A stretch of DNA of 64,000 nucleotides from Bugula neritina (lineage: Eukaryota; Animalia; Bryozoa): the NCBI GenBank assembly GCA_964035545.1, contig OZ037768.1, forward strand, positions 20,009,700 to 20,073,699, in the 5' to 3' direction. Made by a program: the position numbers and the translations under genes. The notes under the pieces were generated by a model, which saw only the letters and a list, made by a program, of their open reading frames with translations, was not told where the DNA came from and ran no database searches. This document shows, in pieces, positions 1 to 38,235 of the stretch (the stretch's first letter is position 1; each line of letters opens with the position of its first letter).

Positions 1-3000
1 TATTGGTTACAGACTAGGTAAATGTTTTTACCATAATCAGTTTTAACACGCATTGCTGTACCATGAGAAATATTACTCCTGTTTAATGTATGCATTTAAT
101 GGCATAAAATTTGTAATTTACCTGTATAGATGACTACACTGCATTACCGACTACCACCATTCAGCCTGGAACACATGGAAATACAGTTTGGTTGACAGTC
201 AACTTGGGGGTTTCAAGACGAGTTTACTCTATCATTGTCTTTTTCGATAGCTCTAGTAAGTGGACAGTTTCTATGTTTTATTTTTTTTCTTTTCTGGTTT
301 TTATTTTTTTTTTGCAGCTATTTAAGTCAGGTGCCAATATTCATTGCCCACTGGATATATATGTTGAACGGTTTATTGATGTCTATATATACCACATCAT
401 GCTCTATGTTTGTACTCTACTTTATTGTTGATTATATTTAATTAATCTTTCCTTGAATTGAAAATTTAAAAAATATAAAGAGAGCTAGCTGTATGGAACT
501 TGTGTGTTGTGTTTGTAGATTCTCCTAGCAGTACAGCTGATGTGCATGTACTAACATCTCAAGCTAAATCTATTAAGAACATTGTATTGGTGAATGACCG
601 AGTCTGGTCGAGAAGATCTTTGGAAAAACTTAGAGCTCCATATGGAGTTGTGTCACTGAGTCCTCCTCAGTATATTCAACACGTTGCTCTACTCACAGCT
701 TCTGATAGTAACTTACGAATTTCTGAAGTGATGGTTCTTGGAAGAGGTTAGTGAAGTATTCTGTATGTCAATATCAATATTTAGAAACTGATATTTTGTG
801 TGTTGCGCTTGTAAACTGAGTAAAGCTTTTGTGATTTGGGCAAAGTGTCACAATCCTTTGCCTACCCTAGTTGTTCTCTTGCATTTTATATGTTGACTTT
901 TTAAGCAAGTTGCTGTGTAACAGAGGTATATTGTATTGTATGTTCTGTTTCTAGGACAAGGGTGTATGTTTAAAACTGGTATGGAGAATTTTGCTTCCTA
1001 TGCTGAAGATAACTTTGACTTGAACAACAGGCATGTTGGTAGTAGTTTTAATCTGGATTGTAAATCAAAACTATGGCAGAAGAAGTGTGAAAACTGTTCC
1101 TCAAAAGTATTCTGTGTGTACGAGATTGGCAGTGATGGAACCAGCTTTGATATGGTGTGGGATGTGACTGAGCAGCAGAAACTCTACTGTAGAAGTATGC
1201 CTCTACTTTTAATCTCAATTCTAACATCAAACCAATCAATACAGTATTTATTTTAACAAGTTCACATGTTGTAGTTTTCAAAAACTTCTATGTTTTCAGA
1301 TTCTAGTGTATGTCTGGTCAGTGATATTCAGTTCTCTGCTATTTCTCTTCCTTCTCACTTTTCTATAAGATCTGAGGCTGAGTATATTTTTCCCGGAGAT
1401 TCTATTTCTGTCTATTGTCCTGATTCATCAGCAACACCACGTTACACACTGCTTTGCTCGTAAGTTTATTAATAAAGTGTATCCAATTACCTGCTATTAT
1501 AAGCATTTAATTAAACTGCTACATTTAATACCTATTATGTTATACAATGCAGGTCTTCATTAACATGGCAACTGGAATCAAATTTCTCGATGTCTTGTCC
1601 ACAAGAAGACATGACTGGCAAGAACTTGGCTTCTTTGGGCTCTGCCACTCAGAGTTCAATATCTCTAGGAAGTGCTGATGTAGCGATTGATGGTGTATTT
1701 AATTTTACTAGAGGTGTTGACGTGTACACAGCAACTTTGTGGGCACCTGACCAATGGTGGAAAGTAGATCTTGGTCATATCATTGCACTATCTCAGGTCG
1801 TCGTCGCCTTCCCTTATGATCAAGGTTTGTTGAATCAAATCATTTTACATAGAAAAAATAGCATACAAGTTGCTATATTTTGTTATTTAGAATACTTCCA
1901 TTCAGCTGTTGATAAATTCACAGCACTACTTATCTATTTTACTTATGGTTTTGGTTTTGCATTGTTTTGGGACGCTTTAGATTATATTTTGTTCATGAAC
2001 TATGTTTTAACATAGTTCATGCTCTCTATTTATTATGTAATATTTCAGATACTTACAATTGGAGCCTTAGTTTTTTCATAAAAACTTCAGTTTTGGTAGA
2101 ATATCATTCTGATATTTCTCGAGATACGCCCTTCTATTATTATTCATATTTGTACGAGGGAACTACCACTAAACCGATCCTCATTATGAATTTACCTGAG
2201 AACGCACCTGCTAGACACGTTGCAATATTATCACTCCAGAACTCTTCATTAGCTCTGCAAGAGGTTCAGGTGTTTGGTAAAAGTATGTACTCAAATATAT
2301 TGCTCTTTAAAGTTCATGTACTGTTTTATAACTTTGCCAAAGTTTCTCTGTCTTAATTACAGCTATTGAAACATGCAAATTGTTTAGAACTCATGTAGCA
2401 TTCATCAACATGTTTGGACTTTCGGTAATTGTTTTATGATGTTACTTCATTGCAGGTGTTGAAATGTGCAAGTTTTTTCTATTAACAGATTCGTACTATT
2501 AAAACTTGTCTTTTTGTTCAGATCTTTTTATCGTGGGTTTCAACTATTTATATTTCCCTTATGATTATCTTTATTCCGTCATTGTGTAAATTGTAATGTG
2601 TATATAAACAAGAAAATGTAAATCCTGCTTTTGGTGGCACTCAATTATAGATAATTATGAAGAAATTATCTGTTTAGGTAGCTTGGCTCGGTTTGGTGCT
2701 GTATCAAGTAGCACCAGTTCTCCCCTCAGTGGCTCTCACAAAGCCAATGATGAAGTGATTGGTTTACACAGGTACTTTATGTCGCAGCTTGAAGTTTCTA
2801 GGTCATGGTGGATGGTGGATCTTGATCACCTCTCGTGGTTATATTCAGTTTATATTTACCCAGCTGGTTAGTTCCTTTCAGTTTTACATAGTCTTGTCAG
2901 TTTTCCAGACACTGTTAGCATTTCTCTGCATACTCTGTCTTGTAGCCAGTCAATTTTTGAAGTGTTTTGTTTCCAGGTTTTCTTGATCAGCAATTTGATG

Positions 3001-6000
3001 TCTACACATCAGTGGATGAAGAGAGAAGCTGTTGGGGAGAAACTCCATTAACTTGTGCATCTATGTTTCTTGTGTTGAATGAAAGTACACTTGGCCTGTT
3101 GGAAGAATCTGTGTTGGCTAGAGTAGTAGCTGTAGTGTCTAAATCTTCTACACTAATACTTGAAGAAGTACTGATATTTGGTGAAACTCCTTCAAGTATG
3201 TGTATTGATTAAAGAAAGAGTTAACCTTTGTTTCACAATAATCAAAGTAACCTCGATAAACTTCATATTGTTTCACATTGAATTTTACAAACATTTCAAT
3301 AATTTTTATTAAAGTGGCAGCTCTTCTAATGACTCATTTTAGTACTTGTGATAGCTGTTCACAGCAAGCATGGATATAATCTTTTCAAAATTAATTTTGT
3401 TAAAATTGTAAACACGCGTGGACATGCTGTTTTAGAGAACCTTGCACTAGGGAAACCTACATCAAATAGAACTACTGCTGGAAATGAAGCTAGACTTGCT
3501 GTAGATGGCATGTGGAGTACATTTTATCAAAGTTTCCCTATTGGTACCCAGTGGTTGATAGTTGATCTGGAGACGTTTCATCTGATTAGTGAGATTGTTG
3601 TTTTCTGGCACCAAAACCAAACAGGTTTGTAGCAAGTGTTATTTTAAGTAGTATTTCAAAATGTCTGCATTTTTAAGGAGCATACCAAAATTAGGGTATA
3701 GGAAATTAGTTTACTTTCTAATCTCTCAGCACAAATTATGAAATCAGCATTAGTTGGTAAGTATGAACTTTATTATTTATATATAGTAATATACCTATAT
3801 AACTATTGTATTTATTGCTAAATAGCTAATATGCTAGTAGCTATAATAGCTATTATAAACTATCTGGAGTAATTTTCAATTTGCATGAATTTGTGTGGGA
3901 CAAAAAATAGTAATAAATTAATAATAGACATTATCTGTAATAAATACTTATTATCGAAATATTTTTTCCAACAGCAAGAAGTATAGAAAAAGCAAAATAA
4001 TTAAGTTAATGCAGATTAAAGAAATTTATTTATGTGCTAAATAACAAGCAATTGATCCAAGTTTATTTAAATGTACATATATTTCAATAATATTCAATTA
4101 AAATGCACATATAATATATATTGTATCAAAATAAATAGTGTCTAGCTGGGAAGCGTCCATGTGTGAAGTGTCTAAGTGGGAAATTTAGCCTATTCTTATA
4201 TCTGTCTACTTAAGATGAAACCTTCCTTTTATCAACTAAATATATTTTTCTTTCAACAATGAACTTATTTACAAATGCAGTCAAATCTTCTCCTCCACCA
4301 ATTCGCATAACAACGTCTCGGGACGATAAAGATCATGGAAAAATGTGTGACTTTGCCTGGACTGACGACTTCACAGAATCTTTGGACCATCCAGGCAATA
4401 GTTATTACAGATACGAGAAATGGAGGTTTGCCAGAAGAGTGAAGATATCTGTTCCCTTTGTTCGTGCTTATTTTGGACTTCACATTAGAGAGGTCTTGAT
4501 TTTTGGTAGTGGTAAGTTGTACTTTATACTTTTCAAAAAGTTTAAATGTTTTGCATTTTCTGTATATGAATGAGTAAGAAAAGTTTTGCAGAATAATAAT
4601 GGTATTTTACTGTACTTTTCTTGCGATATAATTTAGGATGTCTTTTTTACTATTTCACGTGTAACACTACAATCGCTTTTCAGATGATATCGGCAGTGTA
4701 TGCATGATGAAAGATATAGATTCTGACCTCCCTGAAGTTCATGTTGGTAGTAAGATTATACTAGAGTCAGTGTCTGACTATATCCGACCTGGAGAGAAAA
4801 TTTCTCTTGTCTGTCCTCAAGGTCAAGGTTTCAACACATCGTCTCAAAATCTCTCATTGGTTGAAACTCTAGTTTGCTCGTGAGTAATTCAATGGTTGAT
4901 TGTCAAATGGATTTGTTGTAAATGCCATTTATTTTCTGCCGTTATATTATATTCTAGTATTTTATGTAGTGGTGTTTAGTTAGGAAAAGTAATTGATTCT
5001 GACTTAGTATTCGATTTATTTTGATATATTTCAATTTTATGCAACTCTTGATCGTTTTGATAAATGCTTCTTTAAATCTTTAGGAGAGGAACCTGGGCAA
5101 GCCATGGAGAATCAATCAGTTGCATGGGTAAACTCACTACTTCTTGCTTCATTGAAAAGTGTTTTATAGTGTTGAGAAGTTTGTTATTATAATTGCTTCC
5201 AAGTTATTTGCATTTAATGTGACTGAGTTAGCAATATGTATCTCCATGCATCATGGTATGATTTGTATCTGTCTATAGATATAGCCTGTGAACCACCATC
5301 AAACAGTTCACTGTACGAGTACTCTGGTAGCGTCACAATAGATAACTTGATACCTCTAAATCAGACTCTACTGCTAACATGTGATAATGGAATATCATAT
5401 GAATCTCAGTGCAGTAAAAATGGTAACATGAGAATTGGACAGTGGATGCCCCCTCTCACTTGTGGTATGTTTTTTAGTCTTCTGCTAGTGAAAAGTGTCT
5501 GAGAACATGATTTTTGTAACTTTGAAACTAGAAACACGTCTGCAATAATTGGTTTTACAGACTACCAAGAATGCAGTTGGTTCAGTCAACCTGATATATG
5601 GGAAAGAGAGTTGGAGAAGTTTAGAATTGATAGAAAGCAAGAAAATATTATTCTCCTTCATAACTCTGTGGTGTTTAATTGTATGGAGGGTTACCATGGT
5701 AACACGGCTGAGTACATCTGCATGATGTAAGTCATTTTACAAGCGGTACTTTATAAATTTATAGATTGTGTCTCTAAGATTTATAATTTTTTCTAGGAAA
5801 GACAAAAATTATAAATATATTCTCCATATGGCTCCCTGCTTCTAACAACTAATGTCAACGTCTTTGTACTAATATACTCTTTCTTGTAAGTTTATTTCAA
5901 TACACTTTTTCATTTTATGGTTACATGTGTGTACTTACAGTGATTCATCTGGTCTAGTCTCATTGGCAGCTGTTCATCAAAGTTCTGACTCTTGTACTGG

Positions 6001-9000
6001 TCAGTATCAATTGCATTACATTTAGTTGCAATATATTTATTCCCGAGCTTATTAAAAAAAATATCCCTCTTCTTTAATGCTTTGATTTAGAGATCTTGTT
6101 TGCAATTTTCATTCTATTCTAATATTTACAGTGAATATGTGTCCTGCACCATCTGTTGCTCACTACGCTGGATACACCAAACAGTATACTGCTGACTGTA
6201 TAAATGGTAACTCGTGTCAAGTTAGAGAGACTGTGGAACTGAAGTGTACAGATGAGGAAACAGAACCTCTGAATAAACACATCTGTGAGAGTTCTTCTAA
6301 TCAGACAGACTGGCTCCCTCGGTCTACCTGTGGTAAGTTCTCTCTCTCTCTGGGGTGCAATTTTTCAACGAATCATCATTGGCTATGCCAAACGCGACTA
6401 TTCATTGTAAGATTGCTACAGTTCAATAACACTCACTGATGTAACACCTGATAAGCATGATTGTGCTTAAAACAATGACTTTATTATTTACTGTGATCTC
6501 TATGCATTACGTATAGGATATAGGGAAAAGTACGCAGGGAACCTGAAGTTTATAAAGCATATCATTTTTCTGCCATGTGTGGCAATAGCTATACTGTAAT
6601 AACTTGCATAGGCCTATACTATAATAAAAATACACATGGAGCTTAAAGTTTACAAAATATTTCAGTGTTTTGTCTTCCATTACACTAACCATACGATCAT
6701 TGGAAAGTCACAGGTCCTATTCTTTTAGATACACGTTGTGGTCTACCTCCAAGAATCTATGGTTTAGACTGTACAAATAACATACCTATAGAGTTGAACT
6801 CAGAACATCAGAAGTTTCCCAACAGTATGAGGATAGAATGTTCATGTCTGGCTGGTTTTGAACCAGTTAATATATCTCAACTTATTTACATGACTTGTAA
6901 TGGTGAAATTGGTGAATGGGTTCTTTCCTCCGTCAACCCATGCATCTGTAAGTCTTTTATTTTATCTGCATCTTGTTCTCATCTGCTTAGGTTATTTCAG
7001 AGTTTTTAGACACATCAATCAAAAAATCCTGAAAACATGGAGTCTCACTCTCTTGCAATTATTCATTCTATCAAGTGCATCAGACTTCATGTTTATTCTA
7101 TTACTTTAGCATAAGTCAATCATTCTGAATACTAAAACTATATAGTGGCCAGTGGCTTTTATTTCAAAATTCCATCTGAATATTATTCTGTTTTTTTATC
7201 CATTTCAACACACAATTATAGTTGAATCATTATAGAAAAGAGTTGAGCTACCAGAATTGAAGTCTGCACTATCTGCCTTTCCCTCGGTTATCTCTTATGG
7301 GTGTTCCTCAGTCGTTCACATGTTTTAATTTATTTTTAATAAATAATAAATTAACACTGTGGAACATTCAAATAATTACCATAATTATATTAATAATGGA
7401 TTTGTGTAGTGATGACTGAAGAAACATGGTCAGCCAACAGTTCTCAACTGCTGTATGCTAAACTAGATGAATATCCAGTGAGAGCTACAGTGTGCAATGC
7501 TGGGTTTTACATGGATGTGTCATACCCTAACAGACACTTTGTGGTTGATGTCACACCAGCTGAGGATATTGAAGAGACAGAAGTCATATGTTTGCGTATG
7601 TTTATTTTTTGTTGTTTCAATGTTAAATTTTATTTTGTGTTTGTAATGTCATGCTGTTCTTAGCATCTTTAGCTAATTTACCAATATGTTGTAGGTGGCT
7701 GTGATGCTAGTTCTCTTTTGGGTGAGAGTAATAACTTCACACTTCAACCTCTCAAGCAGTTTTATGGACCTGGCGAAGATGCTGTTTTTGATTGCAAATC
7801 TACCAACAACACTTTGATGGGTTTATATGGTATGCATTTTAAAATAATCTTCTAATGTTGATTTCTCTAAAAGAAAAGTCAACAATCAAATATAATAGTA
7901 ATTTATGTTTAATCTAGTAAGTTTTTTCTTTCTCATCAGCATATTAAGTTTCTTTCTAAACATACACAAAAACATTTTAGTTGATGAAAGAATATTCAAA
8001 TGTATTGTGACCATTCAACTGAACATCGAAACTAACTTGAATGAGACTACCTTGCAGTGGAATACTCTGCCCCATGATGTTTACTGTGAAGGTGAATGTT
8101 TTTTCTATTTAATTTTTATAGTTATCTTCTGCTTGTCTAAAAAATTTGAGGTTACTTTAATGTTGCTTAGCTTTTAATGGATGAACGTTTCGTCATTTTA
8201 GCACAAGTCCTAAATACAGAGCCGGAGGTCATCACCAGGAAGTAAGTTGACATTATCTTTAATTATCTTTATTAATATAACAGTTTCAACATAAATATTT
8301 AAAATTTACCCGCAATAATTTAAAGTTACGATCTAATAAAGCAGAATAATTTGTAACTTGTAACTTGGGTGTGTTTTATTTATTTGTAGATCATACGGGT
8401 CAATCAAGTTTGCTGGTGAGATCCTGAATTCTCTCCTTACTAATTCAGCTGACACAACTTCTATTGTACTCATTTTAGTAAAGAAAATGTAGATTGTAGA
8501 TATTCTTATTCAAGGCAATATAGTAAAAAATATAGTAAATTTTCAGAAATAGTGGAGTATTCATTGACTTATCAGTGAGTTCCATTATATATTTGCCTTT
8601 ATACCTGTGTTATAGACCAGGTAGAAGTTGCTCTCTTGTCACTGTGGGACATTACTGTGAGCTCTTCAGATGAATCCAGAGGTGTATTAGTCGACCACAG
8701 ATTAGATTATGTCTGGCAATCACAGGCTACTACTGGCCAATGGGCGATGTTGGAATTTCAAAAATTTATCTCTGTTGTCACAATTCGACTCTACCTTCCA
8801 AAGGCAGCTAGTGAGTTTTTACGTCACCAAAGTATGGCAGCTATGCTGTATATGTTAATAGTCTATGTAGCTTCAAGACATGAATCGCATATATCCGTTG
8901 TTTTATGCGTTCATCTTGCAATATTAGGAATACCACAAGTTGAGAAGTTGTCTATCCTATCTACACTCTCTTCCAATGATCAAACACCTGATTTTGATGA

Positions 9001-12000
9001 TGGCTTCTGGGTAAAACATTTCTACTCAGAGCAACCAATTGGTGGTGACATGAAAGACTTCAACTTTAATGTTGGAACTGTTAGATGTTACAAGATAGCT
9101 CTGCATTCAAACAGCTCCCAGGGACTTGCCTTAAGAGAGATTCAAACGTACCATTTAGGTATAGATAAACTGGCTGACACTTGCCTGTATCCATAGTCTA
9201 TTTTAAAACCTTTAAAAAGTCTCACTTACTATACTTTTTGACTGTGCATGTCTCATAATCAATTATTTTCTATTTTTAGCTAATCTGCTTCATATCAACT
9301 CTACGGCTGTTAGTAGCACCTCAGTTGGAAACTCTTCAGCGAAAAATGTCATCGATGGAGTAGCTGTTACATATGATCATAATTCCTATTTTAAATCTTT
9401 GTCTGGTAGACACCCTTGGCTAGCTTTGTATCTTGGTGATCGATATTTCTTGATAGACATCGCATTAGTGATGAACAGCAATGGTGAGTATAAAGTATAA
9501 ACACGGTTGGAGTTTGCTTGAAAAGTTACAGACAAACCAAACGCACACCCGCACACATACATCTTGCCAATATTTTGTATTCATGTGTTTTAGATGTAAC
9601 TGGTACAAACACCTCTCTCTTCTACAAGCTGGATATAGATACTTCAGCTATTTACGAATCAGGAAACAGTATGTGGACTGATATTGGTTCCTTAAGTGTA
9701 GACTCACCAAATGTTCTGATAGTCAGTCACCCTGTGGATGTGTTTGCTAGTCACCTGGCTGTGGTTGGACAGAGTCATAGTAGTCTTATTATTAATGAGA
9801 TAATGGTGTTTGGTTACATTCTCAGTAAGTCACACTTATCTCGTTATTTGTTTGGCTGTTGCTTTAGTTGAGCCTATTTTACTATGTGTCAGCTGATCAA
9901 ATTTGTTCAGCTCTTCATCATTTTATTATAATATTATGAATATCTTACAAATTCAATGAGTCAGAGCTGAGTGTTATAACATTGTACTGATTTAATTTTT
10001 TGTTCATTTACAACTCAACTTATGTTACAGAAAACTTTGCTGGTGTTGGTGAGACTATGCAGAGTTCAGAAGAATTGGTGGGAGTAACTGGAGCTGAGAA
10101 TGCAGTTGACGGTCTGATATTTGATGAAAGTGTTTATTCTCAAACAGAATCAGATGGACATCAGTGGTGGAGAGTAGATCTGTTGGCTTTACGCAGAATT
10201 TATTCCATTGTCATTTACTCTAGTCTGGCAGGTAAGTGTTTCCTTTATTTTAAGCTATTTCCTATTTGGCCAATTGGTTCTGTAGGTTTTGCATTTCTCA
10301 TCGTTGCGGTGATAGTATATATCGAGTAGTTTAATGTTTTGTAGTTTTCTTGTTCAATTATGCCATTCTATTTCAGATTCTCCAGCATCCAATATCCAAG
10401 TATTGGGTAGTCAAGGTGTAACTGCTGCAAACCCACATCTGTACAAGAATACATGGGCTATAGAGTTATATAATGGCATAGCATTTTTATCTCCATATCA
10501 TGCCATTCACTTGGACCAGTCTAAACTACTTCGTCATGTTGCTATACTATCTGGAGATGATGTTGGCTTACTACTGACTGAAGTAGAGCTCTATGGAAAT
10601 GGTGAGTACTCCCGTAGAGTGCGTTCCCTATTCACTTCCAAGTATTTAGGTATAATTAGTTTACTCTTGTAGTCCTTTTAATATATTTAGTACTTCTTGA
10701 TAGGTGGTTATTTTTGCATATTCGTTTTGATATTGCCACCTGTTTGTTATATCCTAATTAGAATAAAAATATTGGCAAATTAAGTGTGAGGAAGTTCAGT
10801 GCCTGATTTATTTTGTATTACTTCATCAGCTCCATCACTATACCTTTCTGTTACTATGATTTATTCTTCAAGGAGAATCAGTTATAGTGAATAGCTATAA
10901 TATCAGTAATAAAATTATTCAGCCTAAGTACTAGATTAAGCATATTTTTTGTTAAAATGTATATAATATACATATTATGTATTATATGTATAATTATATC
11001 ATACTTATGTAAGTACTCTGTAATTATACATTCATTGCTTATAAAATCGTGTCTCTGGATATTTTAAGCTACTGCATCCAGTGTTTGCATGTTAAGTCAT
11101 ACCAAGCGGAAAATAAATCATTGGTTTTTATTATGCAAATTAAATTAATTGTTATCTTTTTTTAGATCAAGTGTGCATCTTTCGAGATGGTGATGAAAGT
11201 TATTCTCGTTTGGCTACTGATGAGACAGACTTCAGACGCAGATATCCTGGAGAGTCCTTTGAACTAAAGTGTCCTCAGTCTATGTCAGTTGTTTGTCCCA
11301 ACTGTTCAGCTACAGTGACATGCTCACCGGATATTGATAGTAGTACTGGTGTATTTGACATGTTCTGGAATGTAACAGAAGAACAGAAACTTTACTGTCA
11401 AGGTACCGTGGCTCATCCTGTTTTGCTGGTTTGATTGTTTTTATTATAGCAAATAGTGTTCTAATATTATAGTGCATGAGCATTTAATTCTCAAAATACT
11501 TTACATAAGCCTGCACTACAATGTCAATGTTTCCTTTTTCAGTTTAAAATTATTCAATTTTAGATAACGCTTGTGTTTTCAAACCTGGTGAAGAAAGCTA
11601 CGCTAATTTAGCTGATGATGCCACAGACTTTAGACACAGATATCCTGGAGAGTCCTTTGAACTAAAGTGTCCTCAGTCTATGTCAGTTGTTTGTCCCAAC
11701 TGTTCAGCTACAGTGACATGCTCTCTGAATATTGATAGTAGTACTGGTGTATTTGACATGTTCTGGAATGTAACAGAGGAGCAGAAACTTTACTGTCAAG
11801 GTATCATGACTCATTATTTTACTAATCATGTTCTGTTGGTTTAATTGTAAATATTATAGCTAACAATGGTTTTCTAATGATACAGTATCGCTTTTTGGAC
11901 TGAAGGATTTACTCAAGTTTTCCATCAATTAATGCGTTGTCTGCTGGTATTATTACTGTTAGGCATGATTTGGTTAACTTGGTTTAAAATTATAATTCCT

Positions 12001-15000
12001 CATTGGATGGTGTCAATTATCAGTTTACCTGTAGCATATTCTTTCTTTTTATATTATTATAAAAACCTTCTCACTAATTTGTGAACTGCCATTTGTTGTG
12101 TTTCCAGATATAACTTTGTGTACTCAAAGAGATGCTAATAATGCTTTGCCTGCGGCTCTCAGTCTTGTGAAGCCATCGAAATATTTGATAGCTGGTAGTC
12201 TTCAACCATACCAGTGCAGCTCTCACCGTTCAGGAGTTTCAAGTAGAGGAATTCCACTGGCCTACAGTTATTTTATTTGCAGGTACTTTATTCACTTTTA
12301 AATAACAATTTAATTATTGATAATATGTTACCATTTAGCAAGGCACTATAATCTTCTATTCTAGTTTTATCCAAGTTAAGCAGAAGTTTTAGTATTATGT
12401 TAACTTCAATAATACTATATAATCAGTAACTTATTATTAGGGTGACTTAAATGCTCAAGAGTTTAATTAAATTTGATGGGTAAATTTTAGGGACACTTAA
12501 TATTGTTAAAACTTTGAATTTAATATTCTATTTACTTCAGCAAATTGATCCAAAATGTTTTGCTGCCAAAATAAAACTACATTCACAGCTCACTGTGTGG
12601 AACTCTTGAGAAATTCACCAAATAAAATCAGGGTGTTAGGGATGCGTTTTTCAACTTGCAGCTCTGAAGGAAAGTGGGCTGTTGGTGACCCGGAGAACAC
12701 GATTGCCAGCTGTATTAATCGTACCACATCAGAAATTAACCTGGCTATTAATAAAACTACAGACATTAGTTCCATCTCATCTGGGAATCTTTCATATCTC
12801 GTTGATGGATTATTTGATACTTCTGGAAGTTCTGTCGAGATTCTGTCTACAGACAGTGAAGCTAACCAGTGGTGGAAGATTGACTTATTTGCTATATATG
12901 GTATCCGTGAAGTCATTCTCTATGGCTCTAATGGTAAGGCGTTATGCTTACATATAATTAACTACAGAACGCCTGATAAAATGTTAGTGTAATTCTGTAA
13001 CACCTTTCATATTCAATTTCTAGACACACTGCACACCATTCAACAACTACACATATTGACATCTGTTGCCACATACCCTGACAGTGTGCCTTCAGTTTAT
13101 AGCGATTCATGGAACTCAATACATGTATATGATGGACCAACCACACATTGGATTGTCAATGTACAGTTTACATATAGAGCACCTGCTAGGCATGTCGCTC
13201 TGTTGTCTCTATATGATGAAGGATTTGGTCTACAAGAAGTAGAGGTTCTTGGGACAGGTCAGTGATAGAGCTTGCATTTATATTTTGAGGACTACATAGC
13301 ATTTTTTTGATACTTTAATGTTTTATGGTTTGTTTGGAAATGAAAGCACTAAAATTAATCAATTGTGTTACACAGTTTACATTCATGCAATGTATGCCTC
13401 TTTTTGTAGAGAATCTTGCATTTGGTACGCCGTTTGAAGTTAGCAGTGTCTCTCCATACGACAGGCGCCATGCAGCTAAAGTTATTGACGGAATAGTTGG
13501 AGCCATTGAATGTTTTAAAACGGATGTTGGAAAGGGCCAGTGGTTTATGGTGGATCTGTTGAGTGAATATCAACTAGAATGGGTCTATGTTTATTCCGTT
13601 GGTAAGTTCTTATTAAACATCTTTCAGTTGATATTCTATTCTATGCCTTTGTCTATTGTGATTTATGGTATGAGTGTTTACTAGCTTCTCTGTATTATGT
13701 ACTATCATTCTCATCTTGCAGAATTGGCAGCAGATTATGCTACCCTTTATGCTGCCAGTGAGATTCGATCTACTCACTGGGGCGTAGATCCAACCGAACA
13801 CCCAGATCACTGGGCTGCTAATTTCACTCTCAATCAACTATCTGCTGGTCTGCTTTCAACTATGTTCAGGGAGAAGTTCTTTGCTCAGAGCCTTGCGCTC
13901 TACAGTCTATTGGACTATGGTCTGGTCATAGACGAGCTTATTGTTTTTGGATCCCTTGAACAAGGTATTTCCTGCTCTTTTATTCATGCACTCATATTCA
14001 ACATGATTGGCAATAGCTGCTGTTCTATGCAGCCAATTAAACATTTTTTTAAAAATGCTTTTAAGCTGATGAGTTTTTGTGTGTATTCAATTTTCATTAT
14101 AGTTCTACTATAATTGTATTTGCCATTGTAATGAAATTGTACTGATTTAGGTTATAAATACAATTTATATTAACATTTATTACAGAGCCACTTTGTGGAG
14201 AAGATCTTCAATATAGTATTTGGGAAGCCGAACGCCTCAATCATAGACTTCTTGGTGGAGAGCCGAGAAAACTACCAATCAACAAATCTGTAACATTTGT
14301 CTGTCAAGATGGGTACATTGGGGACGCTGTGAACTACACCTGTACTTGGTAAGTTCTACATGTCATACTGTATGGATAACTGTACTAGCTGCAGTTGTGG
14401 TGGCACTGCAAGTGTTTTATAATGTGCCCTTGCAATTTCTATTTGCATTTGAATGGCTTGCGGTTGTAACCTTTATTTCACTGTTTGAAATGTGATTGTG
14501 AAACCCCTAATAAGCACTTGCAACTCTGTTAGTCCTATGCACAGCGATAATTACTCGAGATGTTTTGTATGGGCAAGGTTTGCGAGTTAAAATGGTACTA
14601 TACTTTTACTCTCTTCTATTTCTACTTAGTTACATATCATTTTTTCTTCGCAGGGAGGCATATAAAGGGCCTGTATTGAAGCTTCTTTCTGACAGCAGCT
14701 TTGCTTCCTGCCAAGGTTTGATAGTAATACTCAGCTTTTTTATTTCTGCAACTGTCACAACATTTTAGTTGTGTGATTTACTTACAACTGAAAGGTTTAG
14801 TGTGTATTCTTTGTTTTCTCCAATTGATGTTAAAGAATGCAAAGTAGTACAGTTAGATGGTTTATGCAAAAATATAATTTTTTTTCTAGGTTGGTCTTAG
14901 CCTTGACAGTTTTTCTTAAGTCATCAGCTTGTAATACAAAATATCAACTTTAACTAATTTTCAGTTTGTATTTTTATTAACCAAATGTATTGTCAAGGTA

Positions 15001-18000
15001 GCTTTTTGTTTACAGAAGTAAGTGTATGTCCTGCACCATCTGTTGCTCACTACGCTGGTTACACCAAACAGTATACTACTGACTGTATAAATGGTAACTC
15101 ATGTCAAGTTGGAGAGACTGTGGAACTCAAGTGTACAGATGAGGAAACAGAAACTCTAAATAAACACATCTGTGAGAGTTCTTCCAATCAGACTGACTGG
15201 TTCCCTCAGCCCACATGTGGTAGGTTTTTGTCAAGAATTGTTATAGAGCTTTCAGTTTATCATTTTATTGAATAAATTTACAGATACTATGTAATTTTAT
15301 CACTTCTTACAGCGCCTATTATTTTGTATTTTTCCTTGAGTTAGCCTGCTATACTTATCCCTATTTATGTTCTTTGCCAAATTTTGCTACATCTTTTTCT
15401 TGTAATTTAACATGTAATCCAAGTGAATAATAATTATGGTTTCTATTTGCATTGTTTGCAAAACATTCTATCTAATAATTCTGGCTACATTTAGGTGCAT
15501 ACTGCAATGCCCCTCCTCACGTTCACTCTATTGACTGCTCAAGCTCTTTAGGAGAGTTTTCTCCAGGCAGATATGCGCACGGAACAGTGATACAATGCAC
15601 CTGTGCACCTGGATTTGTGAAAGGTGAGCATTCTATGGGTGATGCTTCTATAATAATTTGTCTATTCAAAGATTCTGAGTTTTATACCCAATTACAGTTC
15701 CTTCAGTCTCTTAGCAACTTTTATTTAAAAGATACTGGTGATTTGGCAGTTTTTAAATGATATCACACAGCATAAGCCTGAAAATCAACGCGCTCTACGT
15801 TCTAGGGCAGAAAAAGTTCATTTTGAGGATATCAATGTGGTATATATACTGGTTAGAATCATAGGTCGTATGCTTTTCAACAACTCAAGTTCAGTTGTAA
15901 AATTTAAATCATACCTTGTGATTTTGAGTTGCAGCTGCTATGGTAATTTTTAAATTAATCTGTTTAGGTGGAAATGCTGATGATCCTACTATGACATGTG
16001 CTGACGATGGTTGGAAAGTTAACAACTCATGCTTGGGTAAAAACTGGAATTATTTGTGTACACTAAATAAGTATTCATGATTGTTTGAAGTAATAGTTAT
16101 TTCACTAATAATTTTCAATTACACATTATAATAAACTTTCAGCTGATGCTCTTCCACTGCACCAGCAGAATGTAGATGTAAGATACTTGAAAATAGAAGA
16201 AAGGCCGTTTATCAGTATTTCTTGTGAAGACGGGTTTTATTTCAACAGACCTGCACCCCACGGCACATTGCTCTTTGACCTAGCTGAGGATGCGGCAGTT
16301 CTAAATGATACTTTATGTATACGTAAGTTTTCAGCTGCAATTTTAATTGTTTCTCATGCCAATTAGCTGCTAAAAATCAAATATCTCTTATGCATTTTAA
16401 TGTAAAATTGCTTTTTAATATAATTTAAATAAAGATAGGAAATTTATTTACATCACTGTATTTGTTTTTAAATACAACTTGGATTTAGCCATCATTTTAT
16501 GTGGTCATTTATAAAATATTGGTCATTTATTTATAATCCATTAAATTACAGGATAGACCATAATTTTTAATGGAGCCGAATATTAAACCTGAAGTCACTT
16601 GTTTTTTAGTTTCATTGTTCTATTAAATAATATAAGGTTTACTAATACTACTTCAAAGATAACTTATAAATGGCAACATATTATTATATTGCATCTGGAC
16701 AAAATCGGTTTAAGTCGTCTGCATGAAATTAGCTTCTTTCCTTCTCCTCTTTTATTATGCTGTGAAAATGTGACTTAATGAACAGAATAATAAGCTATTT
16801 TTTCAGCTTGTGTTATGTTTGATTATCAATAGTTAAGTTTTTCCTCGGTGCAAATGATTTGAACAAACATCTATTTAAATTGTTGAGAGAAGTCATCGAT
16901 TATATATATGTACATTTCGTTTTAAATATTTTTTTCTTATTTTCAGCTGGCTGCAGCCTTCTAGAAATTGAACAGGCCATTGATGGAGTGGTTATTATTC
17001 CGAAAGTTTCATTTTACGGACTGAATGCTGAGGTTGTCCTCGGATGTGCTGATGGTCAAATATTGGATGGAGCACAAGGTAGCCATATTAATTTTAAAGG
17101 CTTCCATGTTGCAAAACTTTCAAACAACAGTTTTCTGATGAAGTAGTTTTTCAGAGTAACTCGTTTAAGTTATGTGAACTTCACTGACATGATTGTGGGT
17201 AAATTTATTGAATCGTCTCATTTAAATATGTTGCCAAGAATGCAGTTATAGTTTTCAAATTAAGGTTTGGAAACAATTTTGCGATGCATTGGAATCAATG
17301 ATGCGAGATTTAATGAGAGGGCTAAGATCGTTGGCTTCATCTGGGACAATTTACCTACAAACACCTCATGTATGCATGGTAAGAAGAAAGCAATATTATT
17401 TCGCGATTACTAAAACATCAGAAAAACGTGACCTTAAACTGAAATGTATTTCTTGTAGAAGAGCGTTAAATGATTCTAGCATTTTTTACACAGCTGTCTA
17501 AAAGGCCATAATAGTGAAATATTGTTTTAGCAAACATAGAAAATATTTGCGGGTGCAATTTGCATATGAGTTTGAGTTTTTTGGATGAAATATAAATAAT
17601 AATTTATTGATATGGATGCTACTTTACAACAAATAATATTTACGTATATTTATATGTCACTAAACTTATAGAACGATAGGTCTAACTTGAAAAAGCTGTG
17701 TATAAAAGTTGTATTTTTTTAGAATTATTTGAAAGTAATTTATTTTAATTTCATTCTTGAAGCTGGAACTACAACTGAAGTTGACACTTCTCCTGACTCT
17801 ACCACAATATCTTTCAAATCCGAGTCTACAACTGGTTCGCAAACAATCTCTGATGTTCCAACCACAATAACAGAAGCAGATACCACAATTAATGCTGACA
17901 CTTCTCCTGATTTGACTACAACTGAAGTTGACACTTCCCCTGACTCTACCACAATATCTTTCAAATCAGAGTCTACAACTGGTGCGCAAACAATTTCTGA

Positions 18001-21000
18001 TGTTCCAACAACAATTACAGAAGTAGACACCACAATTAATGCTGACACTTCTCCTGATTTGACTACAACTGAAGTTGACACTTCTCCTGACTCTACCACA
18101 ACAGCATTCAAATCAGAGTCTACAACTGGTGCGCAAACAATTTCTGATGTTCCAACCACAATAACAGAAGCAGATACCACAATTAATATTGACACTTCTC
18201 CTGATTTAACTACAACTGAAGTTGACACTTCTCCTGACTCTACCACAACAGCATTCGGATCAGAGTCTACAACTGATGCGCAAACAATTTCTGATGTTCC
18301 AACAACAATTACAGAAGTAGACACCACAATTAATGCCGACACTTCTCCTGATTTGACCACAACTGAAGTTGACGCTTCCCCTGACTCTACCACAATATCT
18401 TTCAAATCCGAGTCTACAACTGGTGCGCAAACAATTTCTGATGTTCCAACAACAGTAACAGAAGTAGACACCTCAATTAATGCTGACACTTCTCCTGATT
18501 TGACCACAACTGAAGTTGACGCTTCTCCTGACTCTACCACAATATCTTTCAAATCAGAGTCTACAACTGGTGCGCAAACAATCTCTGATGTTCCAACCAC
18601 AATAACAGGAGTAGACACCACAATTAATGCTGACACTTCTCCTGATTTGACCACAACTGAAGTTGACGCTTCTCCTGACTTTACCACAATATCTTTCAAA
18701 TCAGAGTCTACAACTGGTTCGCAAACAATCTCTGATGTTACAACCACAATAACAGAAGCAGATACCACAATTAATGCTGACACTTCTCCTGATTTGACTA
18801 CAACTGAAGTTGACACTTCTCCTGATTCAACCACGACATCTTTCAAATCAGAGTCTACAACTGATGCGCAAACAATTTCTGATGTTCCAACCACAATAAC
18901 AGAAGCAGATACCACAATTAATGCTGACACTTCTCCTGATTTAACCACAACTGAAGTTGACGCTTCTCCTGACTCTACCACAATATCATTCAAATCAGAG
19001 TCTACAACTGGTTCGCAAACAATCTCTGATGTTCCAACCACAATAACAGAAGCAGATACCACAATTAATATTGACACTTCTCCTGATTTGTCTACAACTG
19101 AAGTTGACACTCCTTTTAACTCAACCACAACATCTTTCAAATCAGAGTCTACAACTGGTGCGCAAACAATTTCTGATGTTCCAACCACAATTACAGAAGT
19201 AGACACCACAATTAATGCCGACACTTCTCCTGATTTGACTACAACTGAAGTTGACACTTCTCCTGATTCTACCACAACAGCATTCAAATCAGAGTCTACA
19301 ACTGGTGCGCAAACAATCTCCGATGTTCCAACAACAGTAACAGAAGTAGACACTACAATTAATGCTGACACTTCTCCTGATTTGACTACAACTGAAGTTG
19401 ACACTTCTCTTGACTCTACCACAGTATCTTTCAAATCAGAGTCTACAACTGGTGCGCAAACAATCTCTGATGTTCCAACAACAATTACAGAAGTAGACAC
19501 CACAATTAATGCTGACACTTCTCCTGATTCGACTACAACTGAAGTTGACACTCCTTTTGACTCAACCACGACATCTTTCAAATCAGAGTCCACAACTGGT
19601 GCGCAAACAATTTCTGATGTTCCAACAACAATTACAGAAGTAGACACCACAATTAATACTGACACTTCTCCTGATTTGACCACAACTGAAGTTGACGCTT
19701 CTTCTGACTCTACCACAACAGCATTCAAATCAGAGTCTACAACTGGTGCGCAAACGATCTCTGATGTTCCAACAACAGTAACAGAAGTAGACACCACAAT
19801 TAATGCTGACACTTCTCCTGATTTGACTACAACTGAAGTTGACACTTCTCCTGACTCTACCACAATATCTTTCAAATCAGAGTCTACAACTGATGCGCAA
19901 ACAATTTCTGATGTTCCAACAACAATTACAGAAGTAGACACCACAATTAATGCTGACACTTCTCCTGATTTGACTACAACTGAAGTTGACACTTCTCCTG
20001 ACTCTACCACAACAGCATTCAAATCAGAGTCTACAACTGGTGCGCAAACAATCTCTGATGTTCCAACCACAATAACAGAAGTAGACACCACAATTAATGC
20101 TGACACTTCTCCTGATTTGACTACAACTGAAGTTGACACTTCTCCTGACTCTACCACAACAGCATTCAAATCAGAGTCTACAACTGGTACGCAAACAATC
20201 TCTGATGTTCCAACCACACTAACAGAAGCAGATACCACAATTAATGCTGACACTTCTCCTGATTTAACCACAACTGAAGTTGACGCTTCTCCTGACTCTA
20301 CCACAATATCATTCAAATCAGAGTCTACAACTGGTTCGCAAACAATCTCTGATGTTCCAACCACAATAACAGAAGCAGATACCACAATTAATGCTGACAC
20401 TTCTCCTGATTTGACTACAACTGAAGTTGACACTTCTCCTGACTCTACCACGACATCTTTCAAATCAGAGTCTACAACTGGTGCGCAAACAATTTCTGAT
20501 GTTCCAACAACAGTAACAGAAGTAGACACCACAATTAATGCTGACACTTCTCCTGATTTGACTACAACTGAAGTTGATACTTCTCCTGACTCTACCACAA
20601 CAGCATTCAAATCAGAGTCTACAACTGGTGCGCAAACAATCTCTGATGTTCCAACCACAATAACAGAAGCAGATACCACAATTAATATTGACACTTCTCC
20701 TGATTTGTCTACAACTGAAGTTGACACTCCTTTTAACTCAACCACAACATCTTTCAAATCAGAGTCTACAACTGGTGCGCAAACAATTTCTGATGTTCCA
20801 ACCACAATTACAGAAGTAGACACCACAATTAATGCCGACACTTCTCCTGATTTGACTACAACTGAAGTTGACACTTCTCCTGATTCTACCACAACAGCAT
20901 TCAAATCAGAGTCTACAACTGGTGCGCAAACAATCTCTGATGTTCCAACAACAGTAACAGAAGTAGACACCACAATTAATGCTGACACTTCTCCTGATTT

Positions 21001-24000
21001 GACTACAACTGAAGTTGACACTTCTCCTGACTCTACCACAACAGCATTCAAATCAGAGTCTACAACTGGTGCGCAAACAATCTCTGATGTTCCAACCACA
21101 ATAACAGAAGTAGACACCACAATTAATGCTGACACTTCTCCTGATTTGACTACAACTGAAGTTGACACTTCTCCTGACTCTACCACAACAGCATTCAAAT
21201 CAGAGTCTACAACTGGTACGCAAACAATCTCTGATGTTCCAACCACAATAACAGAAGCAGATACCACAATTAATATTGACACTTCTCCTGATTCGACTAC
21301 AACTGAAGTTGACACATCTTTTGACTCAACCACGACATCTTTCAAATCAGAGTCCACAACTGGTGCGCAACCAATTTCTGATGTTCCAACAACAATTACA
21401 GAAGTAGACACCACAATTAATACTGACACTTCTCCTGATTTGACCACAACTGAAGTTGACAGTTCTCCTGACTCTACCACAACAGCATTCAAATCAGAGT
21501 CTACAACTGGTGCGCAAACAATTTCTGATGTTCCAACAACTATTACAGAAGTAGACACCACAATTAATGCTGACACTTCTCCTGATTTGACTACAACTGA
21601 AGTTGACACTTCTCCTGACTCTACCACAACAGCATTCAAATCAGAATCCACAACTGGTGCGCAAACAATTTCTGATGTTCCAACAACAATTACAGAAGTA
21701 GACACCACAATTAATGTTGACACTTCTCCTGATTTGACCACAACTGAAGTTGACACTTCTCCTGACTCTACCACAACAGCATTCAAATCAGAGTCTACAA
21801 CTGGTGCGCAAACAATTTCTGATGTTCCAACAACTATTACAGAAGTAGACACCACAATTAATGCTGACACTTCTCCTGATTTGACTACAACTGAAGTTGA
21901 CAGTTCTCCTGACTCTACCACAACAGCATTCAAATCAGAATCCACAACTGGTGCGCAAACAATTTCTGATGTTCCAACAACAATTACAGAAGTAGACACC
22001 ACAATTAATGCCGACACTTCTCCTGATTTGACCACAACTGAAGTTGACGCTTCTCCTGACTCTACCACAACAGCATTCAAATCCGAGTCTACAACTGGTG
22101 CGCAAACAATTTCTGATGTTCCAACAACAGTAACAGAAGTAGACACCACAATTAATGCTGACACTTCTCCTGATTTGACTACAACTGAAGGTGACACTTC
22201 TCCTGACTCTACCACAACAGCATTCAAATCAGAATCCACAACTGGTGCGCAAACAATTTCTGATGTTCCAACAACAATTACAGAAGTAGACACCACAATT
22301 AATGCCGACACTTCTCCTGATTTGACCACAACTCAAGTTGACGCTTCTCCTGACTCTACCACAACAGCATTTAAATCCGAGTCTACAACTGGTGCGCAAA
22401 CAATTTCTGATGTTCCAACAACAGTAACAGAAGTAGACACCACAATTAATGCTGACACTTCTCCTGATTTGACTACAACTGAAGTTGACACTTCTCCTGA
22501 CTCTACCACAATATCTTTCAAATCAGAGTCTACAACTGATGCGCAAACAATTTCTGATGTTCCAACAACAATTACAGAAGTAGACACCACAATTAATGCT
22601 GACACTTCTCCTGATTTGACCACAACTGAAGTTGACACTTCTCCTGACTCAACCACAACATCTTTCATATCAGAGTCTACAACTGCTACGCAAACAATCT
22701 CAGATGTTCCAACCACAATAACAGAAGCAGATACCACATTTAATGCTGACACTTCTCTTGATTTGACTACAACCAATGTTGACACTTCTCCTGACTCTAC
22801 CACAACAATATTCAAATTAGAGTCTACAACTGGTGCGCAAACAATCTCTGATGTTCCAACAACAATTACAGAAGTAGACACCACAATTAATACTGACACT
22901 TCTCCTGATTTATCTACAACTGAAGTTGACACTCCTTTTAACTCAACCACGACATCTCTCAAATCAGAGTCTACAACTGTTGCCCAAACAATTTCTGATG
23001 TTCCAACCACAATAACAGAAGCAGATACCACAATTAATGCTGACACTTCTCCTGATTTGACTACAACTGAAGTAGACACTTCTCCTGACTCTGCCACAAC
23101 AGCATTCAAATCAGAGTCTACAACTGGTGCGCAAACAATCTCTGATGTTCCAACCACAATAACAGAAGCAGATACCACAATTAATGCTGACACTTCTCCT
23201 GATTTGACTACAACTGAAGTTGACACTTCTCCTGACTCTACCACAACAGTATTCAAATTAGAGTCTACAACTGGTGCGCAAACAATCTCTGATGTTCCAA
23301 CAACAATTACAGAAGTAGACACCACAATTAATACTGACACTTCTCCTGATTTATCTACAACTGAAGTTGACACTCCTTTTAACTCAACCACGACATCTTT
23401 CAAATCAGAGTCTACAACTGTTGCCCAAACAATTTCTGATGTTCCAACAACCATTACAGAAATAGACACTACAATTAATGCTGACACTTCTCCTGATTTG
23501 ACCACAACTGAGGTTGACACTTCTTCTGACTCTACCACAATATCTTTCAACTCAGAGTCTACAGCTGGTGCGCAAACAATTTCTGATGTTCCAACAACAA
23601 TTACAGAAGTAGACACCACAATTAATATTGACACTTCTCCTGCTTTGACCACAACTGAAGTTGACACTTCTCCTGACTCTACCACATTAGCATTCAAATC
23701 AGAGTCTACAACTGCTGCGCAAACAATCTCTTATATTCCAACCACAATAACAAAAGCAGATACCACAATTAACATTGACACTTCTCCTGATTTAACTACA
23801 ACTGAAGTTGACACTCCTTTTGACTCAACCACGACATCTTTCAACTCAGAATCTACAACTGGTGCGCAAACAATTTCTGATGTTCCAACAACAGTAACAG
23901 AAGCAGACACTACAATTACTGCTGACACTTCTCCTGGTTTGACTGCAACTAAAATTCATACTCCTTCTAACTTCGTACCCAGTAACCCTACTACGTCTGC

Positions 24001-25170
24001 AGTGACAGATCCTACACCCGATTCTTATGTAACAGCTCCTGTAGCAAAGTCTACTACAGAAGTCATGTCTACTTCAACTGTTGCAGACACTACTACCGAA
24101 CTCCATAGCGGTAAGTACACTTAGGTAATTTTTTCAAGTTCGTATTTTCTAAGTGCTTTTTTCCAAGCAACTCTTCCAACTCTGTTTATCCTACAGACCA
24201 GCTCTCTTCAGTACAGTCTTCTCGCTCTGACTCAACGCCTGGTTCAACTAACAGTGATGTCACAAGTGACCCTCCTTCTTCTACCTCTGAAGCTGTTGTG
24301 CCTACTATGACAGAGATTGAATATATGATTCCTATGGATTTTACCACAGGTATTGTTTTTTTCTTTCATTCAATCTTAGTTTTGTTCCTAATGCTCATAG
24401 TTTTATGTCTAATAATATATATGCAGTTGAATATTGTATAATTTTATTCAGTTTTCAATCAAACCTATAGGTATATTTTGAAGCTCACTCTGCTTTGATG
24501 TATATAATGCTGTTTGCACTAAGTTAGTGCTCTTGCTATAGTTTTGCAATGCTAGTTAGCCAACTTATTGATCAATTTAAAAAGTTATTTTGCATTTTGG
24601 TGTCAGTTTCATGATTTTTTATAAAGTAAATGTAATTGGAAACTCGTTTCATGTATTTTACTTTTTCTTTTTAAGTACGTTAAGAAGCACTAATCTTATT
24701 TATCATGAATTCAGCATAATATCCTCTTGAGTTGCACATTTGCATTTTCGTTATTTTGTATTTTCCTGATTTGTGTTGTAGAGCGGGACACAGATCCTGT
24801 TGCTGAGGAGACGCCTTTCTACTATCAAACCACATGTAATATACTCCCTCCCTCCTTCATGTTTTTTATCAATTGGTCATATGCTGTCTGTCCAATATTC
24901 TCTTTTTTTAAATTACTTTTTTGTGTGACTGAGCTGTTAGATTCACATATATTGCTATAGATCTCATCAGTGTTTGTCCATTGCATATATTATTTATACT
25001 TTCATACATTTTTAGATGAGAAGCCTTGGCGAGAAACGACTGCTGAATTTTCATCGCCCACTCCATTGGGACTTGAGGGTTCAAGTGATAGCCCACCAAC
25101 ACTCGCATCTTCATTGGTTTTCATCATATTCATGTTGATTCTTCATGTTGTTTTTGTTTTGCTATTTTAA
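1..25170 (+). CDS. Giant multi-exon cell-surface protein (5'-truncated): F-type-lectin/discoidin-fold repeats + sushi/CCP-like repeats + mucin stalk + GPI-type tail
   Basis: Manual GT-AG model; every junction is phase-consistent. Exons: <1-17,130-255,519-746,955-1194,1300-1459,1553-1824,2049-2282,2678-2866,2977-3195,3436-3624,4281-4511,4684-4879,5084-5127,5279-5464,5561-5726,5941-5999,6132-6332,6729-6947,7410-7595,7695-7829,7981-8091,8202-8241,8390-8415,8616-8810,8928-9158,9280-9483,9594-9824,10031-10231,10377-10601,11166-11402,11564-11800,12108-12282,12662-12933,13024-13257,13410-13601,13722-13964,14186-14348,14654-14715,15016-15219,15495-15623,15968-16036,16143-16322,16947-17078,17265-17378,17763-24110,24197-24349,24782-24835,25016-25170. 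Recurrent NLA..G...QSS/AIDG/WW.VDL/RHVA...L.L.EV.V.G motifs (F-type lectin fold) and C..P..C..G..C...W...C motifs (sushi-like). Confidence 0.85.
1553..2282 (+). other. Representative F-type-lectin-fold domain (two exons, 1553-1824 and 2049-2282)
   Basis: NLASLGSATQSS...ADVAIDG...QWWKVDLGH...PARHVAILS...LALQEVQVFG follows the FTP/fucolectin scaffold. The same scaffold occurs at 130-746, 2678-3195, 3436-4511, 8616-9158, 9280-9824, 10031-10601, 12662-13257 and 13410-13964. Confidence 0.8.
17768..23941 (+). repeat. Coding tandem array: 42 x 147 nt (49 aa, TTTEVDTSPDSTTxxFKSESTTGAQTISDVPTTITEVDTTINADTSPDL), mucin/PTS stalk
   Basis: Units start at 17768, 17915 and so on; 6174/147 = 42 with no length variation. 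About 45% Ser/Thr, with 9 acidic and 1 basic residue per unit. Lies in exon 17763-24110 (ag|CT ... G|gtaag). Confidence 0.95.
25016..25170 (+). other. Terminal exon encoding a probable GPI-anchor signal
   Basis: ...LEGSSDSPPTLASSLVFIIFMLILHVVFVLLF-stop: small residues (GSSDS), a short spacer, then a hydrophobic tail running to the stop with no cytoplasmic residues. Confidence 0.7.

Positions 25171-35705: not shown

Positions 35706-38235
<2,530 letters not shown>

Follow-up and report, generated by a model that had tools for sequence, protein, structure and literature searches.

F-type lectin domains (FTLDs) are combined with complement control protein (CCP, or sushi) repeats in Drosophila Furrowed and CG9095 and in SpCRL (PMC5712786). 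Furrowed and CG9095 possess one or few FTLDs together with a C-type lectin domain and a transmembrane segment, with the fucose-binding triad of CG9095 being degenerate, and the sea urchin protein SpCRL has a FIMAC domain, one or few FTLDs and a region rich in Ser, Thr and Pro (PMC5712786). Tandem FTLD-fold domains, each with an intron inside it, are found in oyster sperm bindin, MsaFBP32 and the Xenopus pentraxin fusion protein; oyster bindin contains 1-5 FTLDs and has evolved under positive selection (PMC5712786). A further layout, consisting of a signal peptide, a CCP chain, a Ser/Thr stalk and a glycosylphosphatidylinositol (GPI) anchor, is that of CD55 (DAF), which has 4 CCPs, a short stalk and no lectin-fold domains. 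Here we describe a gene of the bryozoan Bugula neritina that enters a 64,000-nucleotide stretch of DNA (contig OZ037768.1, positions 20,009,700 to 20,073,699; hereafter the window) from upstream, and whose predicted product brings 42 lectin-fold domains and ~70 CCP-type modules together with a 2,116-residue mucin and a GPI-like end. The F-type lectins that have been reviewed carry 1-5 such domains, whereas this gene encodes 42, all of them without the fucose site.

Gene structure and transcription

Our curated model places a single gene on the + strand at G000:C4:19946723-20034869 (~88 kb), with 201 exons that are all joined at GT-AG introns and a coding sequence of 40,377 nt, which is translated into 13,458 amino acids (aa) with no internal stop. 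It was derived by training a coding model on the window and curating the result by hand; the exons upstream of the window are curated predictions, and a few short linker exons may be misplaced, although the overall picture is unaffected by them. The introns are short (median 182 nt, longest 1.7 kb), and 140 of the exons are of phase 1-1, the remainder being paired as 1-2/2-1. The window holds only the final 35% of the gene, whose ATG lies 62,977 nt upstream of it (at G000:C4:19946723) and opens a hydrophobic signal peptide. Inside the window (130-25170, +), 47 GT-AG exons with consistent phases form one frame of 4,763 codons with its sole stop at the end; the sixth of these exons has been extended to 2282 in the final model. 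They encode 9 lectin-fold domains (8 full and one with a short first half), 15 sushi-like domains and 2 two-Cys modules (Table 1). An initial annotation, made from the window alone, had arrived at the same lectin-fold and sushi-like counts and at more than 4,700 codons, which is correct for the window but underestimates the gene ~threefold; what it took for two copies of one module corresponds to the last part of module 6, the complete module 7 and module 8 in truncated form, out of a total of eight.

The predicted protein follows the order signal peptide, eight modules, 2,116-aa acidic mucin and GPI-like tail. Only two segments among its 13,458 aa are strongly hydrophobic, viz. the first and the last 20 residues, and these provide the only hydropathy maxima in a scan of the whole protein (aa 3, 2.19; aa 13,440, 3.07). 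The precursor would have a mass of ~1.48 MDa before glycosylation, and its domain part carries 204 N-glycosylation sequons.

The gene is expressed. The RNA evidence comes from a single sample, whose two runs are deposited as symbiont-metagenome RNA-Seq and yielded short contigs. Their exons differ from the window by ~3-7%, and a divergence of this size would be explained by the status of B. neritina as a complex of sibling species (PMC4183541). Across 11.9-17.85 kb of the window, the RNA contigs cover exons and not introns. Twelve of the 13 predicted introns in this interval are skipped exactly at GT..AG, the 13th shows a displaced joint, and none of the 13 spliced joints is present in the DNA run. 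One of the joints (17377→17762) joins the mucin exon to the final sushi exon, which bears out, for this sample, the earlier proposal that one gene links the domain region to the mucin. Loose ends of the RNA contigs, compared by eye, also fit junctions in upstream modules (exons 82/133 to 83/134, and 31 to 32).

These contigs are too short to show a 40-kb transcript and their direct joints are confined to the interval named above, and an alternative that we regard as very unlikely is that no single 40-kb mRNA is made, the locus yielding shorter products through module skipping, internal starts or at least two tandem genes joined by read-through. Nearly all exons have phases of 1-1 or paired 1-2/2-1, so that modules could be skipped in frame, the annotation of an independent draft assembly (GCA_010799875.2) splits the locus into models of 144 and 4,594 aa, and the RNA loose end joined to 12108 resembles by eye the end of exon 183, the first of two six-Cys copies in module 8, rather than that of exon 184. 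However, neither a stop nor a second signal peptide nor any intron >1.7 kb occurs in the 88 kb, and the 144-aa draft model is simply exon 3 read together with intron sequence on both sides. A single full-length transcript is the product predicted by our model.

Module duplication and sequence conservation

The eight modules contain in total 42 lectin-fold domains, ~63 sushi-like domains and 8 two-Cys modules. A full module consists of a six-Cys sushi domain, a sushi domain, 3 lectin-fold domains, 5 sushi domains, a two-Cys module, a further sushi domain and 3 lectin-fold domains. Modules 4 and 6 are each one lectin-fold domain short, and module 7 has a linker between its last sushi-like domain and its final 3 lectin-fold domains. 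The truncated module 8 comprises two tandem six-Cys sushi-like domains, a sushi-like domain, 2 lectin-fold domains, 3 sushi-like domains, a two-Cys module and a last sushi-like domain. Odd and even modules represent two types, which form an A-B pair (~18.3 kb, 2,870 aa) that is repeated along the gene, the first pair being older. Copies of the opening 2 kb of the window, with 82-94% identity, lie 18.7 and 36.9 kb upstream, and homologues of the exons extend to about -62.5 kb with no mucin between them. Some exon slots break the A-B pattern (one sushi slot common to modules 2-7 and several that are unique in modules 7 and 8). These exceptions may have arisen by unequal crossing-over or by gene conversion acting in patches. 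In module 8 only, the six-Cys exon is tandemly duplicated (window 11166-11800) as copies that are 91% identical and 398 nt apart, and the duplicate may be skipped or absent in the RNA-sampled strain. The gene would have grown from a module to an A-B pair, followed by duplication of the 18.3-kb pair with patchy exchange between the copies, and the locus provides a clean example of exon blocks that were duplicated at successive levels (module, A-B pair, four pairs) and homogenized in patches.

Two trivial origins of this repetition have been ruled out. An assembly artefact or haplotype duplication does not account for copies that are 82-97% identical with diverged introns, nor for A and B types that alternate in register; the depth of DNA contigs, which is raised ~4-6-fold at exons with 4-5 copies, is a rough guide in this regard, and the run may be the source of the assembly. 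Separate tandem genes that each possess a mucin are excluded by the upstream sequence, which has neither a mucin nor a stop.

The six-Cys sushi variant is found at a single locus in this genome, this gene being its only carrier, and it is a specific marker for locating orthologues. A profile of the nine six-Cys exons gave 15 protein matches among 1.84 billion, one of which is a 144-aa B. neritina fragment around exon 3 (KAF6032773.1, hypothetical protein EB796_008910). The model adjoining it in GCA_010799875.2, of 4,594 aa, has faint F5/8 matches, and the gene is recorded publicly only as such hypothetical pieces. Two profile matches (P0010 and P0014) share a short Cys motif only and are probably due to chance. 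The six-Cys domain is also present in nine other samples, viz. six SRR255697xx runs of one series, ERR7439267 and two ENA metagenome assemblies, at 33-48% identity; one of the homologous accessions is a marine-biofilm metagenome. Where DNA was at hand, the order of neighbours is kept in these samples (35-46% identity), the six-Cys exon being preceded by lectin half exons and followed first by a sushi exon and next by a lectin start. Our guess is that the organisms concerned are bryozoans. No paper describing the gene turned up in the literature searched, in line with the initial annotation, which had not recognized this combination of domains at this scale.

Exons 1-21 are 93-99.6% identical to those of GCA_010799875.2 (pS 0.088, pN 0.023, dN/dS 0.25), and whole segments including introns show 83-90% alignment identity. 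The dN/dS between module copies is 0.34-0.36 (average ~0.35), with a value of 0.36 for the duplicated lectin exons. Judged from these comparisons, sequence change in the gene has been mostly purifying, unlike that of gamete or allorecognition proteins, to which an earlier interpretation had likened it.

Lectin-fold, sushi-like and mucin regions

Each lectin-fold domain is split by a phase-1 intron into two exons, and most of the domains have no internal cysteine pair. A profile of 18 first-half exons matches F-type lectins (FBP32 3cqo, E 1.3e-13; lectinolysin 3le0, 8e-8; SP2159 2j1r, 2e-6; eel agglutinin 1k12, 5e-6), a profile of second-half exons gave no PDB match, and Pfam F5_F8_type_C(_2) stays below its cut-off on single lectin exons. 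By these profile matches, the domains belong to the F-type jelly-roll fold. Binding of fucose by this fold is associated with the motif H-x24-R-x-D-x4-(R/K) (PMC5712786), and in the alignment of the profile with the solved F-type lectins the fucose-binding His lies eight residues before the first Trp of the WW motif. None of the 42 domains has the aligned His, none has an R-x-D segment behind the next strand and none has the triad in register, and the lone regular-expression match to the motif (aa 9297) is out of register. The strict cation motif h2-D-G-x (x = N, D or S) was found in one of the 42 domains, whereas the looser h-D-G occurs in 25 of them and all 18 aligned domains have the Asp. 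As read from their residues, the domains share the F-type fold but fall outside the fucose lectins, and the lectin-type recognition of bindin and fucolectins that had been suggested for them is not upheld. Oyster-type bindin also differs from this gene in other respects, viz. the 42 domains, the purifying selection and the added CCPs, mucin and anchor.

An alternative close to the idea of the initial annotation is a multivalent recognition molecule, in which 42 lectin-fold domains with new non-fucose specificities would be held out on the mucin stalk towards microbes (including the symbiont), food particles, gametes or neighbouring colonies. The ~17 distinct lectin-fold sequence types that are kept in one chain, the phase-1 intron in every domain, which permits chimeras, and the 13 non-synonymous changes among 24 changed codons in four exons of the RNA strain are in keeping with this possibility. 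In addition, proteins with FTLDs and CCPs act in immunity and adhesion, and some bindin isoforms are also triad-less (PMC5712786). Nevertheless, we consider such a molecule possible but rather doubtful, in view of the lack of triads, the single strict calcium motif, the presence of one locus, the lack of a cytoplasmic signalling part and the low dN/dS both between assemblies and among the duplicated lectin exons. A receptor recognizing fucose or evolving in a hypervariable manner is unsupported, since no triad was found and the dN/dS of the duplicated exons is ~0.35.

Lectin-fold exon matches are also present at ~80 other places in the genome, in clusters (G000, C5:452000-516000, C5:1230000-1333000, C3:7640000-8122000, C8:9625000-9644000 and C6:11230000-12860000). 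About ten of them lie on one strand within 65 kb at C5:452-516 kb and may be part of another very large multi-domain gene.

The profile of the sushi-like exons matches CR1 (1.5e-13) and factor H (4.4e-13), and Atlas relates these exons to Sushi clusters at 0.96, although no single sushi-like exon passes the Pfam Sushi cut-off. By these matches, they are divergent members of the CCP/sushi type, which is defined by a length of ~60 aa, a pattern of four Cys with a G-F/Y turn and a Trp before the last Cys, and the CCP beta fold. The six-Cys module reached a pLDDT of 84 in one of five models; nearly all of its best structure matches are CCP modules at weak scores (Z up to 4.1), Foldseek gave no significant match for it, and its identity to CD55 modules is 12-21%. 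For the two-Cys module, the best profile match (beta-2-glycoprotein I) is weak at E 0.4 and the model has a pLDDT of 51. The sushi and F-type-lectin folds that had been read from the window sequence thus find support in profile, Atlas and structure-model matches.

The mucin is encoded by 42 copies of a 147-bp unit within a single exon of 2,116 codons. Each copy codes for a 49-aa unit rich in Thr, Ser and Asp, with no Cys; the composition is 31.5% Thr and 13.6% Ser (45% Ser+Thr, 51% Ser+Thr+Pro), with 17.8% Asp+Glu and 2% Lys. Such a long Ser/Thr/Pro repeat in one large exon is typical of tandem-repeat mucins with a Pro/Thr/Ser (PTS) region. A homologue search with the mucin was limited in length, and its lack of a match is hence uninformative. 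The acidic composition (18% Asp/Glu against 2% Lys) would suit a skeletal matrix scaffold, in which calcium is bound by the acidic, probably O-glycosylated stalk, while the organic matrix under the lightly calcified cystid wall is organized by the sushi and F5/8-type domains. Both F5/8 type C and sushi domains are known from the skeletal proteomes of brachiopods and annelids (PMC13425148). These domains are, however, common in all secreted proteomes, the GPI-like tail and the length of the protein suit a membrane-tethered coat, and no bryozoan skeletal proteome was found in the literature searched, and we view this role as unlikely.

The last exon encodes small residues 28-30 positions from the end (omega-site candidates), a polar spacer and 18 hydrophobic residues before the stop, which by inspection has the appearance of a typical GPI signal. 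Together with the N-terminal signal and the lack of an internal membrane segment in the hydropathy scan, this is the layout of a GPI-anchored protein, and it agrees with the CD55-like order of CCPs, Ser/Thr stalk and GPI end that the initial annotation had put forward; its term receptor is doubtful for a protein without a cytoplasmic part. The GT sites within the hydrophobic stretch have donor scores of -0.6 to -4.4, compared with a minimum of 1.2 for true donors, and hence a cytoplasmic tail spliced on behind this stretch, the possibility that could have overturned the earlier proposal, is unlikely. Alternative 3′ ends through a downstream candidate exon (Table 1) would yield a protein that is either secreted or held by a transmembrane segment with a short cytoplasmic tail behind it. 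This exon has a good acceptor at 25592, an open phase-1 frame without a long hydrophobic end and a coding score above those of intronic open frames (maximum -0.067, n = 11), and CD55 offers a precedent for a secreted isoform. Its coding score is nevertheless below that of the weakest true exon (0.038), and in view of this and of the donor scores we regard such 3′ ends as highly improbable.

Table 1. Positions of features in the window, counted from its first nucleotide
Feature	Position	Strand	Remarks
Last 16 nt of model exon 154, from a lectin-fold domain (second half)	1-16	+	154 exons, ~8,690 aa upstream
Last lectin-fold domain of module 6	130-746	+	Two exons, first half shortened
Module 7, complete	955-10601	+	26 exons
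Module 8, truncated	11166-17378	+	15 exons; splicing confirmed from 12.1 kb on
Mucin exon	17763-24110	+	6,348 nt; tandem-repeat analysis; RNA joint to preceding exon
Antisense open reading frame, 1,529 codons	17740-22329	-	By-product of the mucin repeat composition
Two short predicted Ser/Thr/Pro/acidic exons	24197-24349, 24782-24835	+	Coding scores 0.149, 0.167 (within true-exon range)
Last exon, GPI-signal-like	25016-25170	+	Stop at 25170
Candidate alternative last exon	25592-25782	+	63 codons; coding score 0.020
First AATAAA past the stop	26041-26046	+	Candidate poly(A) signal
Small gene, Shisa N-terminal-like Cys domain	36633-37886	+	E 1.7e-4; Tyr/Ser/Gly-rich pieces
Frizzled gene	43171-46615	-	Two exons; Pfam Fz 2e-33, Frizzled 1e-72 and 2e-51
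18-bp tandem repeat	51758-52074		17.6 copies; open frames on both strands
CDK-type protein kinase-like exon	~57100-58300	-	Read by eye; tested piece without Pfam match

The neighbouring genes include a Frizzled gene 18 kb downstream. Fly Furrowed acts with Frizzled; the proximity of the Frizzled gene to the giant gene is probably a coincidence. The gene directly upstream (L010:~8100 to L009:~2500, +; 72 to 67.5 kb before the window) is aldo-keto-reductase-like and, from its peptide read by eye, resembles L-galactose/L-fucose dehydrogenases.

Proposed role and comparison with known systems

Our preferred interpretation, which we hold with middling confidence, is that this single-copy gene encodes, as a 13,458-aa precursor, a filament with a structural or adhesive role that is tethered by GPI in the apical cell coat or at the cuticle interface. 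The N-terminal signal peptide would take the precursor into the secretory path, where the domain part would be N-glycosylated and the mucin O-glycosylated, and the GPI anchor would tie the protein to the outer membrane leaflet, from which it might be shed. An O-glycosylated mucin spans ~0.25 nm per residue and domains of this kind 3.5-4 nm each. From these values, the mucin would form a stiff, hydrated, acidic spacer of ~0.5 micrometre if extended, bearing a chain of beads (~70 sushi-type modules and 42 lectin-fold domains) that would add a further 0.3-0.4 micrometre, so that the whole could reach up to ~0.9-1 micrometre. The lectin-fold domains, lacking the fucose site, would most likely be structural and make low-affinity multivalent contacts in self-association or in binding to cuticle or matrix, and the filament would serve in barrier formation, spacing and adhesion at this surface. 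We prefer such a role as the simplest account of a protein that has no cytoplasmic part and no fucose site, encoded by a gene that has one locus and is under purifying selection.

Several points weigh against this interpretation. The case for a structural role is built on what is missing (the triad and a diversifying signal), and the RNA consists of short contigs that all come from a single sample, of a divergent strain, in which 13 of 200 introns are directly covered. A few exon slots have a dN/dS of 0.8-1.0, with small counts, and the domains within a module are ~15-35% identical, which would also fit many distinct specificities. Furthermore, F-type-fold domains that lack the triad may have ligands of other kinds, as does the C2 domain of factor V, which binds phospholipid (PMC5712786).

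A broader version of the filament interpretation, which we put forward as speculative and somewhat improbable, is that the gene represents a lineage-wide (probably bryozoan) class of GPI-tethered, micrometre-scale filaments, in which dozens of F-type-lectin-fold domains have turned from fucose to other uses and make up an ordered series of new binding sites. The protein would then be one of the largest GPI-anchored proteins, carry by far the longest F-type-domain array and form the main scaffold of the surface coat at which the zooid encounters microbes, symbionts and neighbours. In the literature searched, no protein of the bryozoan cell coat or cuticle interface was found, and the gene provides a defined candidate component of it.

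This gene shares parts with the described systems, but by the features that define them it falls within none of them. Unlike Furrowed and CG9095, it has no internal hydrophobic segment, and all exons of its head encode FTLD-fold domains, sushi-like domains or linkers; compared with SpCRL and its FIMAC domain, it has 42 FTLD-fold domains that alternate with ~70 CCP-type modules, a 2,116-aa mucin and a GPI-like end. The likeness to CD55, CR1 and factor H of the RCA family lies, as far as the weak profile and structure matches indicate, at the level of the fold, the Bugula modules being too divergent for the Pfam Sushi cut-off. CR1 has grown by long homologous repeats, and the growth of the Bugula gene is similar. 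MUC16, Drosophila Dumpy and Uninflatable are very large apical glycoproteins with tandem modules and a PTS region that act as barrier, tether or spacer, although their modules are different (SEA in MUC16; EGF, DPY and ZP in Dumpy; EGF, CUB, FA58C and HYR in Uninflatable) and they possess transmembrane anchors with cytoplasmic tails. These three are likely working analogues of the Bugula protein, with no homology implied. The domain types of the gene are all known and its layout has precedents in CD55, SpCRL and Furrowed; hence, what is surprising about it is the scale and the degeneration of its domains rather than a new mechanism.

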